A DNA stretch of 64,000 nt, taken from NCBI GenBank assembly GCA_950097015.1, contig CATNEN010000029.1, positions 806,001 to 870,000 on the forward strand, given 5' to 3'. The first letter of the stretch is position 1. Every line of letters starts with the position of its first letter. The translations under genes were made by a program, and so were the position numbers. Below, in pieces: positions 24,801-27,252 of this stretch. Origin of the DNA: Macrostomum hystrix (taxonomy: Eukaryota; Animalia; Platyhelminthes). Below the pieces are notes generated by a model. It searched no databases and was not told where the DNA came from. It saw nothing but the letters and a program-made list of their open reading frames with translations.

Positions 24801-27252
24801 TTGCCAACTGGCTTTTTTGGCAAGCGAATATGTTGTGAACTTTTTTTACTTGGAAAAAAATTGCTTTTGCACTGGCATGCAGGCATCACTTTTGATTTTC
24901 TCTTCGTTTTTGTGTCACTCTGTTTTCTATTCGCTTAGAGCTACTGAGTTGATTTCATAATTAGAAAATGTTTAAATCATTCATAATCATCAAAAGTTAC
25001 TCGTACATTAAAGTAAATTTATATATTTATATTTAATTACGTTACGGACGTACTTAAGACATACCACGCTATCGTAATCCTATCTGGTGTGCCTAGTACA
25101 TTAAGTTGAGGGTTAGTGTGGACAGTTTTCGGTAATGCACGTCGCTGAGTCACGCTCTTCTCAAACCGCGCCACCCCAATCTTTAGCCCTTCGTCATCGC
25201 TGATTGGTTGTGAAGTGTATATATATATCCGTCGTTAGACGGGCTCTGGCTGCCCCCTGCTGATTGCAGAAAAAGTCTATCCCTTCCTCGTCGCTGATTG
25301 GCTCAATTCTATTTGTAGATGTATAGTTGACCCTCTGCGGGCTGTCCGTTGTTAATTAAGAAAAAATCTATCCCTTCCTCGTCGCTGATTGGCTCAATTC
25401 TATTTGTAGATGTATAGTTGACCCTCTGCGGGCTGTCCGTTGTTAATTAAGAAAAAATCTATCCCTTCCTCGTCGCTGATTGGCTCAATTCTATTTGTAG
25501 ATGTATAGTTGACCCTCTGCGGGCTGTCCGTTGTTAATAAAGAAAAAAATCTATCCCTTTCTCGTTGCTGAAAAAGTAGTCTATTTGCAAAATTAGCTAG
25601 TCATGTGCCGGCTGTCCTCTTTCAATAAAACACACTGTCTAGCCCTATGTGTGTTTGTTTCCGCGTCCTTGCGCGCGCTTTCAGAAAGACGATCGTGACG
25701 TTGACAACTTTGACAAGACCTTCACCAAAGCCGATGTCAATCTAACCCCGGTTGATCCGGCTGTCATTCACAATCTATCAACTGTCACCGGCTGCGACCC
25801 GTTTTACGATTTCGACCACCGCAACGACAGCTATGCTCCGCGCGCTTCTCATCTCTACCAGCTAATGAGCGCGCTGGACACCCGAGACAGCCAGGACTGA
25901 GGCTTCATTGTTCACTGACCATTGTTTCTAAGAATTCACCCTAAGATATGTTTATGCCCGTAGACTTTTCCCTTAACTTTCTGTCCGTTGAACAGTGTTT
26001 CCGTCGCGTTTATTCTAACTTTATTTAATACTCTGTTTGTGTTATTGACACGGCTCCGTTAATGCTTGTGATAATTTAGCTTTGTACTGCAGCAACTTGG
26101 TATCTGTTTGCTGATGTCAGCTTTTTATTTTATCAATATTTATTGTTCATTTGTTTTCCTTGTGTTTCGAAAATGTCGTGCTGCTAGTGAATCGCCATTC
26201 AAAAAGCTTCTAAATCAATCGATATTAATTTAAATAGGTGCATTTCGGTAAAACCTGAACCCGAATGTATCAATATCGATTTATCGATTTTTAGTAATTC
26301 GATTTAGTAAACATTTGTAATTTAGTTGGTTTTGTGAAAACGGAATGACTTAATCGATAATAAGAATAGATTTGAGGGGGTGAGTGGGTCAGCGGCTAAT
26401 GTCGCTGCCTCCCTTTCCAATGGTCGCTGGTTCGTTCCTCCCTCCAAGTCACGATTATTTCGGGGCTTAGTTGGAGGTTTGCCAAGTAGTGACTTGCGGA
26501 GATGCACCTTATTCTGTGCAACCAAGGCTAATTTAAAATAGCTTAACCCCTGCCTTCTGCATGCCTGCTTGTTTGTTTGTGCGTTGGGCCGGGTGTGAGG
26601 CGCTGTATGGGGGGTGGGGCGGGTGTGCACCAATGTGTACTCTCGTCCCTACCCTTCAGGCATCTAAGCCCTCTGGTTTGATCTGCTCTGTGCGTGTGCT
26701 GGCCTGGGGTGAGAGGCACTCCGGCTGCCGCCCCCTTCCCCGCTTGGCTTGCTGCTGTGTGTGAGGTGCCGGTGTCCAGGGGTCTAGATGGCGCGATGGG
26801 CCTAGTTCGCCGGCCTGGGAGCATGCCGTTCCTGTGTTTGTGCGTCAAGTCCCCAGGCCCCCTGCCAATAAGTAAATAAGAAGAGATTTGAATCATCTAT
26901 TAATTTTACAATTAAAAATCGATAAATCGATCGATGTCGCTATATAGCAATCAATAAATCGATAAGTCGCTTTGTAAGAGTCTATGAATCACTATGATAT
27001 TGATAAGAATGTCGAGTCCTACTTTATCCAGTATTTTAGCCAATAAAGTCCCTCAGTAAAATCGCATCCTGTCCCTATTCGCTCTGCCGCTTGTCTCAGA
27101 AATCAGCTCGCGATGTCAGCAATTTTGATCGGCAGTTCACAGACGAAGCCGCCCGCCTGACGCCAACTGACAAGCTGTTCATCATGAACCTAGACCAGAC
27201 TGAGTTCACCGGCTTTTCCTATGTCAACCCGGAGTTCATTGTGGACGTTTGA
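3896..27252 (+). CDS. PRKCB: Conventional (Ca2+/DAG-dependent) protein kinase C, alpha/beta-like; 658 aa with the distal terminal exon
   Basis: Exons 3896-4047, 4506-4537, 4607-4689, 5083-5191, 6395-6523, 11398-11551, 11983-12214, 14948-15082, 17020-17193, 17978-18069, 19866-19928, 20012-20150, 21633-21821, 23052-23192, 27100-27252. All junctions are GT..AG with matching phases; total 1977 nt. Motifs: pseudosubstrate [13 protein letters not shown]1A HKF..FCGHC, C1B FCDHC, C2 ([24 protein letters not shown]), [34 protein letters not shown], turn motif LTP, hydrophobic motif FTGFSY. The symbol marks the closest vertebrate class; one-to-one orthology is not implied. Confidence 0.95.
6748..7330. 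repeat. 22-bp minisatellite (AGGGAATTGGRTGCCGGATTTG), about 26 copies, PKC intron 5
   Basis: Read directly. Confidence 0.95.
8428..8985. repeat. 111-bp tandem repeat, about 5 copies, PKC intron 5
   Basis: 37-aa periodicity in ORF 8414-8935; units nearly identical. Confidence 0.95.
10060..11386. repeat. 48-bp double-palindrome satellite, about 27 copies, ending at the PKC exon 6 acceptor
   Basis: Unit GAGTCCACT-AGATACCGGTATCT-T-TAAATGCTCATTTA-GTTTAATTCT. Confidence 0.95.
11575..11910. repeat. Low-complexity (GTGACA/CTGTGT)-type repeat filling PKC intron 6
   Basis: Read directly. Confidence 0.85.
12269..12620. repeat. 18-bp minisatellite (GATCCCATTCGGAATCGT), about 19 copies, PKC intron 7
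   Basis: Read directly; internal palindrome ATTC-G-GAAT. Confidence 0.95.
15092..16978. repeat. 22-bp minisatellite (TGCTGCTGRACTGGGATTAGCA), about 85 copies, fills PKC intron 8
   Basis: Read directly; AGCATGCT palindrome across unit junctions. Confidence 0.95.
18090..19510. repeat. Compound 20-bp minisatellite (GTCTGAGTAGGTTGGAGCTG, then GTCTGAGTCGGTTGGAGCCG from about 19210), PKC intron 10
   Basis: Read directly. Confidence 0.95.
20151..21027. repeat. 22-bp G-rich minisatellite (GATGGTGGCGGGTGTAG-AGGGA/CGGCA), about 40 copies, starting at the PKC exon 12 donor
   Basis: Read directly. Confidence 0.95.
21830..22135. repeat. 15-bp hairpin minisatellite (GTCAGATCACATCTG), about 20 copies, PKC intron 13
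   Basis: CAGAT-CAC-ATCTG inverted repeat in each unit. Confidence 0.95.
22130..23035. repeat. 21-bp minisatellite (GTCAGGTCAGTWGTTGACTCA), about 43 copies, each with TGACTCA
   Basis: Read directly; ends about 16 bp before the exon 14 acceptor. Confidence 0.95.
23470..24475. repeat. 22-bp C-rich minisatellite (TCCCATCCCCTGATCTACCATC), about 45 copies, PKC intron 14
   Basis: Read directly. Confidence 0.95.
25268..25570. repeat. 91-bp tandem repeat, about 3.3 copies, containing GCTGATTGGCT
   Basis: ctatccctt recurs at 25277, 25368, 25459 and 25551. Confidence 0.9.
25685..25900 (+). CDS. PKC proximal alternative terminal exon (15a); gives a 679-aa isoform
   Basis: Pyrimidine-rich acceptor ...gcgcgctttcag|AAA in phase 0, matching the exon 14 donor. 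Encodes [71 protein letters not shown], a clear V5 homolog (NFD, LTP, FxxF). Confidence 0.8.
   Translation, partial: KDDRDVDNFDKTFTKADVNLTPVDPAVIHNLSTVTGCDPFYDFDHRNDSYAPRASHLYQLMSALDTRDSQD
26376..26874 (+). mobile_element. SINE family A, second copy, between PKC exons 15a and 15b
   Basis: Aligns by eye with 916-1555 at the head (ggtcagcggcta..gtcgctgcct..caagtcacgatt) and tail (gcgcgatggg..ctagttcgccgg..ccccctgc). TSD AATAAGAA(T/G)AGATTTGA at 26359-26375 and 26875-26891, one mismatch. Confidence 0.8.
27100..27252 (+). CDS. PKC distal terminal exon (15b), PKC-betaI-like V5
   Basis: Acceptor ttgtctcag|AAA. Encodes [50 protein letters not shown]; [14 protein letters not shown] matches the PKC-betaI tail as I recall it. 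Confidence 0.93.
   Translation, partial: KSARDVSNFDRQFTDEAARLTPTDKLFIMNLDQTEFTGFSYVNPEFIVDV

Follow-up and report, generated by a model that had tools for sequence, protein, structure and literature searches.

The 64,000-nucleotide stretch of DNA analysed here, from contig CATNEN010000029.1 of the flatworm Macrostomum hystrix (referred to below as the window), carries a protein kinase C (PKC) gene that offers two different C-terminal tails. The gene lies on the plus strand and runs from its start codon at 3896 to the stop of its distal tail exon at 27252, as determined by exon-wise Pfam matches and direct reading. Behind the shared exon 14 lie two tail exons, named 15a and 15b. It is probable that a single conventional PKC gene uses these two as alternative V5 exons at its 3' end, and that an aspartate at the phosphorylation site of the hydrophobic motif makes the 15a tail a phosphomimic one. 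Conventional PKCs, as a rule, carry a phosphorylatable Ser or Thr in this motif; 15b follows the rule with FTGFSY, whereas 15a departs from it with FYDFDH. The isoform ending in 15a is a conventional PKC by its domains that has left the rule of its subfamily at the hydrophobic-motif site.

The class of the gene follows from its regulatory region. The Pfam scan of the single exons found two C1_1 domains spread over four exon pieces, a C2 domain spread over two exons, Pkinase matches in the kinase exons and a Pkinase_C match in each tail exon. The first exon encodes a pseudosubstrate and is followed by the tandem C1 domains, of which the small C1A exon of 32 nucleotides was read directly. The two C2 exons (11367–12220, plus strand) gave E values of 5.5e-17 and 1.2e-06, and all five Ca2+-coordinating aspartates were found in them on direct reading. 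The arrangement is C1-C1-C2, and the region is neither of the PB1 type known from atypical PKCs nor of the HR1 type of PKN. By this architecture the gene at 3896–27252 is classed as a conventional PKC of the Ca2+/diacylglycerol (DAG) type. A first-pass annotation of the same DNA had described it in these terms, and the number 15 that it gave to the tail exons was matched by an independent count of coding exons. The shared exon 14 (23052–23192, plus strand, phase 0) ends in ..FKPRI on a whole codon before a gtgagt donor, so that either tail can be attached without loss of the reading frame. The introns of the gene are full of long regular tandem arrays, at 21829–23037, 23479–24474, 25268–25571, ~10055–11431 and ~12224–12652. 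These have periods of 15, 21, 22 and 91 nucleotides, with up to 45 copies that match at 94–99%; the 22-nucleotide array at 23479–24474 fills intron 14.

The coding part of exon 15a occupies 25685–25900 on the plus strand (71 codons and a stop at 25898–25900) and is preceded by a tttcag acceptor with a pyrimidine-rich tract. That of 15b occupies 27100–27252 on the same strand (50 codons and a stop at 27250–27252) behind a tctcag acceptor. The two are homologous tail exons in tandem, with equal phase, good acceptors and separate stops, and 16 of 31 residues are identical over their first halves. Both score above the Pfam Pkinase_C cut-off of 20.9 bits, 15a with 30.0 bits (E 8.6e-07) and 15b with 53.9 bits. 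No third tail exon was found in the 64-kb window, an Rfam scan of 24000–29000 gave no match, and the frame of 15a has no start codon inside the exon.

The 15a peptide has the NFD motif of the AGC-kinase tail and the other landmarks in the expected order. The pair F13-T14 (25721–25726, plus strand, as are all positions of this exon) retains the Thr of the TOR-interaction motif, as seen in an alignment of ten PKC tails, and residues 20–22 (25742–25750) form the L-T-P turn motif, whose T21 is invariant in that alignment. The hydrophobic motif F-Y-D-F-D-H comprises residues 40–45 (25802–25819), and D44 falls in the column of the phosphorylated Ser or Thr both in the alignment and in the HMMER comparison with PKC beta tails. 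An extension of 26 residues (25820–25897) follows, with a conserved core N..[YF]AP..S.L and the end DSQD, and behind the stop lies a 3' untranslated stretch seen in RNA contigs at 25901–26040; the contigs over 15a end at 26040, 25982 and 25871. In 15b, the motif FTGFSY is found at 27205–27222 (plus strand) and the tail ends in IVDV. The motif letters of both exons, the retained LTP, the length of the extension and the two endings had all been given earlier, and direct reading and translation reproduced them exactly. An AlphaFold2 model of the isolated 15a tail was set aside as uninformative (mean predicted local distance difference test score, pLDDT, 57.5); its helices at residues 25–35 and 52–70 are not to be trusted.

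With the 71 residues of 15a as query, 1.84 billion representative proteins were searched exhaustively. Two specific relatives were returned, with E values of 2.4e-16 and 1.5e-08, which places the likeness far beyond chance. The relative from Macrostomum lignano is the gene model A0A1I8GZD6, with the tail motif FEGFEH, and the relative P0003, from the anonymous assembly contig L001, has the motif FAEFDF. Other matches of this search (P0002 and P0004–P0006) consisted of several stretches and were set aside as probably unrelated. Profile word searches, which covered candidate lengths of ~40–140, 74–236 and 168–535 residues, added P0007 from an anonymous contig, with FVEFDF, and two Thr-bearing relatives. 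Four tails of the 15a type were thereby available, namely FYDFDH (window), FEGFEH (M. lignano), FAEFDF (P0003) and FVEFDF (P0007).

In the alignment of ten PKC tails, the phospho-site column holds an acidic residue (D, E, D and D) in each of the four tails of the 15a type, and Ser or Thr in the six others. Both phenylalanines of the motif, the NFD motif, the turn-motif Thr and F13 are invariant in all ten, and T14 is nearly so. The 15a-type tails share further features among themselves: an insertion of 3–4 residues; an invariant D-P-F directly before and overlapping the hydrophobic motif (25796–25804), where ordinary tails have D/S/T-E-F; and the extension core N..[YF]AP..S.L, in which N47, A51, P52, S55 and L57 do not vary. 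The Pro of the turn motif is not conserved; P0003 and P0007 have V or I at its place. The first-pass annotation had pointed to an FxDFD pattern and named a lack of conservation as grounds for refutation. This test did not refute it, as the phospho-site residue is D or E in all four 15a-type tails, while the pattern as a whole is lost in the FEGFEH of M. lignano. The His at the last position of the motif recurs in M. lignano and is replaced by Phe in the two remaining tails. The DSQD end is not conserved, the other tails ending in NSDK or in a further 65-residue stretch rich in Ser and Pro, and it is the core of the extension that has been kept instead.

Comparison of the window with L001 gave codon identities of 0.68, 0.71 and 0.34 at the first, second and third positions, while no alignment was obtained for the intron and 3' sequence on either side. 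With the first two positions conserved and the third near random, this pattern indicates that the 15a protein has been under purifying selection for a long time. The best relative of the gene, A0A1I8GZD6, is 94% identical to the window in exon 11, ~81% in the matching part of exon 13, 70% in exon 14 (which matches residues 188–234 of the model) and 64% in 15a, as befits DNA from a related but distinct species.

The 15a-type profile matched the tails of solved conventional PKC structures best, with 30–35 bits for beta and alpha, and set the acidic residue opposite the phospho-serine. Its match to PKC iota was weak (~20 bits), and among the solved chains it found no match to PKN. By profile comparison, the 15a tail is a modified conventional-PKC tail, and descent from PKN or from an atypical PKC was rejected on these scores; the earlier description of the tail as PKN-like does not hold as a statement of origin. 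The 15b tail matched PKC beta-I with 68.1 bits, aligned to the last residue, as against 41–45 bits for alpha and beta-II. It shares an identical stretch of 14 residues with vertebrate beta-I and ends in EFIVDV, where the latter ends in EFVINV. It is classed from this alignment as a beta-I-type tail, and since the likeness reaches from flatworm to vertebrate, a tail of this type looks ancestral to bilaterians. For 15a, no preferential similarity to beta-II was seen, and orthology with the beta-II exon was not supported by the profile comparison, though it may hold nonetheless.

The two Thr-bearing relatives, P0008 (L002, FSNFTY) and P0009 (L003, FRGFTF), come from spliced PKC contigs, keep the Thr of the hydrophobic motif and have RKAENFDK and LTPVD.A[VI]L in common with 15a-type tails. 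They may be regarded as a third class of tail, characterized by RKAENFDK, FTRVPIRLTPVD and a Thr motif, which takes an intermediate place between ordinary tails and those of the acidic 15a type. In the columns common to all, their likeness to the 15a type is a little greater than that of b-type tails. The alignment gives a hint, and only a hint, that the acidic residue replaced Ser or Thr within one lineage.

The evidence from RNA consists of contigs from three small RNA-derived runs of a single study, picked for containing 15a. These were compared with the stretch 24480–27400, so that exon 14 lies outside it and is visible only as an overhang. The splice from exon 14 to 15b is seen directly: in all three runs, contigs start exactly at 27100 and carry the last 30 nucleotides of exon 14 as overhang. 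Over 15a, the contigs cover 25715–26040, 25690–25982 and 25700–25871 at a word depth of 3–6, as compared with 23–29 over 15b. The depth is zero over 24480–25655 and 26048–26341, in the intron on either side of 15a. A covered block with silent flanks indicates that the 15a signal is exon-shaped and stems neither from a retained intron nor from DNA. In the M. lignano model A0A1I8GZD6, the orthologue of exon 14 is joined to that of 15a at exactly the position that corresponds to 23192|25685. The earlier view of 15a as an alternative last exon of a Ca2+/DAG-type PKC was supported, the exon being real, conserved and transcribed. It may end the transcript, or it may be a cassette exon that brings a stop codon with it, the protein being the same in both cases; the tail exon of vertebrate PKC beta-II is a cassette exon of the latter kind.

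A dispersed repeat lies at 26375–26885, in the intron that separates 15a from 15b, and has a copy at 915–1556, near the start of the window, that is 69–75% identical. The RNA contigs over it are deep (45–100) and show variants and foreign overhangs, which assigns them to other copies of the repeat. The RNA blocks at 26376–26770 were accordingly rejected as PKC transcript.

The consequences that the 15a tail might have can be set out against the priming of conventional PKCs. In these enzymes, mTORC2 acts on the TOR-interaction and turn motifs and PDK1 then acts on the activation loop (PMC12721161, PMC13142937). The final step is an intramolecular autophosphorylation of the hydrophobic motif, which is required for the stable autoinhibited state (PMC12721161). 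Removal of this phosphate by PHLPP1 leads to dephosphorylation, ubiquitination and degradation of the kinase (PMC13142937). Atypical PKCs have Glu at the hydrophobic-motif site (PMC13142937), and a TANC2-PKC alpha fusion in which the Ser of this site was changed to Glu was reported to have high basal activity (PMC8008189).

In M. hystrix, splicing of exon 14 to 15b gives the main isoform, with a tail of the vertebrate beta-I type and a phosphorylatable Ser in the hydrophobic motif. Splicing of exon 14 to 15a, a junction that we infer for this species, would give a minor isoform that retains the regulatory domains, the kinase core, NFD, both priming Thr and both pocket-filling phenylalanines. 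In the latter, the fixed Asp (Glu in M. lignano) would stand in for the phosphate, and docking of the tail on the N-lobe would no longer depend on the final autophosphorylation. Priming of the mTORC2 and PDK1 types would still be needed; since the Thr residues of the TOR-interaction and turn motifs have been kept, at most the last step of priming would be bypassed. A phosphatase of the hydrophobic motif could not reset such a tail, and the outcome would be a PKC that still responds to Ca2+ and DAG while differing in maturation and down-regulation. As a surface for interactions, the C-terminal end of the beta-I type would give way to the conserved extension. Docking of the tail, resistance to phosphatase, PDK1 binding, stability, the loss of a PDZ-type interaction and the role of the extension are deduced here from the sequence in combination with mammalian biochemistry.

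It could also be that 15a, although joined to exon 14, acts in trans, for instance through high-affinity docking of PDK1 in the manner of the PDK1-interacting fragment (PIF), or acts through its extension, and not as a phosphomimic in cis; this we consider unlikely. The F-x-D-F-D of the window does resemble the PIF peptide of PRK2, but the Glu of M. lignano leaves no PIF-type FxDFD consensus. The extension core N..[YF]AP..S.L and the D-P-F have been kept no less well than the acidic residue itself, which could then be a secondary accommodation to an extension that functions in localisation or partner binding. The His at the last position of two tails may weaken binding in the pocket, yet both phenylalanines that enter the pocket are invariant. 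Activity of a mammalian conventional PKC catalytic fusion with Glu at this site (PMC8008189) argues further for a phosphomimic in cis, which remains the preferred reading.

A number of observations weigh against 15a as an alternative last exon with a phosphomimic tail. Not one of the RNA contigs of the three runs contains the 14–15a junction, and those of 15a begin 5–30 nucleotides inside the exon; moreover, all three runs share one study and had been chosen for holding 15a. No canonical poly(A) signal occurs within ~400 nucleotides after 15a, and the true 3' end of the exon is undefined. The gene model of M. lignano is predicted and fragmentary, with parts of the N-lobe absent, and half of the 15a-type tails (P0003 and P0007) come from anonymous contigs. 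Two of the four have His in place of the last aromatic residue, and Asp and Glu are imperfect mimics of phosphate in any case.

The lack of a junction contig and of a poly(A) signal could be taken to mean that the 15a RNA is a separate transcript, produced by spliced-leader trans-splicing, which occurs in flatworms, or from an intronic start, so that M. hystrix would have no PKC with an acidic tail. This appears quite improbable: coverage starts within 5–30 nucleotides of an acceptor that matches in phase, conservation at the codon level requires translation in frame although the exon lacks a start codon, and the M. lignano model joins both exons. That 15a is a duplicated tail exon in decay and without function is scarcely credible in spite of its lower Pfam score (30 vs 53.9 bits) and low RNA depth. 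Four sequences have kept its frame open and conserved, conservation is found at the first and second codon positions with the third near random, it has conserved lineage-specific additions and its transcription is exon-shaped.

A broader proposal is put forward more tentatively, and we place less than even confidence in it. Flatworms like Macrostomum may use splicing to switch a PKC between a phosphorylation-dependent tail of the beta-I type and a conserved, constitutively acidic tail, a natural counterpart of S660D/E. A PKC with the second tail would go on sensing Ca2+ and DAG, would be exempt from autophosphorylation of the hydrophobic motif and from down-regulation of the PHLPP type, and would bring a new conserved docking segment. 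The phosphate of the hydrophobic motif is at once the last step of maturation and the handle by which PHLPP and degradation control the amount of PKC. If the proposal were true, the gene would let nature itself show how far PKC quality control depends on one phosphate, and splicing would select between a PKC that can be down-regulated and one that cannot. Attention would be drawn, too, to a conserved segment of the tail that is new. Since transgenic work is established in the laboratory model Macrostomum lignano, the system is accessible.

Elsewhere in the window, a very large tandem array extends from ~58560 to the window end at 64000, with a period of 9/18 nucleotides; its plus strand is rich in C, with a guanine-cytosine skew of ~-0.39. 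On the minus strand, an open frame of 220 residues at 32654–33313 strongly matches pentapeptide-repeat Pfam families (E 2.7e-50), and this frame may be no gene at all but the translation of a short tandem repeat in the DNA.

Several known systems share single properties with the gene described here. The vertebrate PRKCB likewise places tandem homologous tail exons behind a shared exon in one gene, and its beta-I and beta-II isoforms differ only in the last 50–70 residues; both of its tails, however, keep a phosphorylatable Ser (FSY/FSF), where 15a has Asp or Glu. In the 1997 work of Islas-Trejo et al., another invertebrate conventional PKC, pkc-2 of C. elegans, is said to have alternative C-terminal exons. 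Two beta-type PKCs of Schistosoma mansoni have been described with serines at the hydrophobic-motif site (PMC3117856), namely Ser647 and Ser590 (PMC4055629).

Atypical PKCs (zeta/iota) resemble 15a in having a fixed acidic residue at the phospho-site (PMC13142937). They differ from the flatworm gene, with its C1-C1-C2 region, in carrying PB1 and in lacking the Ca2+-binding C2 and the second C1. The FEGFEH of M. lignano is one residue away from FEGFEY, the motif of atypical PKCs. PKN/PRK2 also have Asp at this position, within the PIF motif F-x-x-F-D-Y, and the F-Y-D-F-D of the window resembles their F-R-D-F-D; the flatworm gene, in contrast, has no HR1 domains, and the Asp at the third position is not conserved among 15a-type tails.

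The engineered forms S657E of PKC alpha and S660E of PKC beta-II have the same substitution as 15a, at the same site and in the same subfamily, but these are laboratory constructs. The acidic change of 15a, unlike them, is natural and conserved, is accompanied by a conserved extension and can be selected by splicing. The UniProt entry of A0A1I8GZD6 carries no comment on its acidic tail. The first-pass annotation knew of no described case, and searches of the literature for a conventional PKC that gains an acidic motif through an alternative exon found none either. Alternative V5 exons are known from vertebrate PRKCB and C. elegans pkc-2 and acidic motifs from atypical PKCs and PKN; what appears to be new is an acidic motif brought in by an alternative exon of a conventional PKC.

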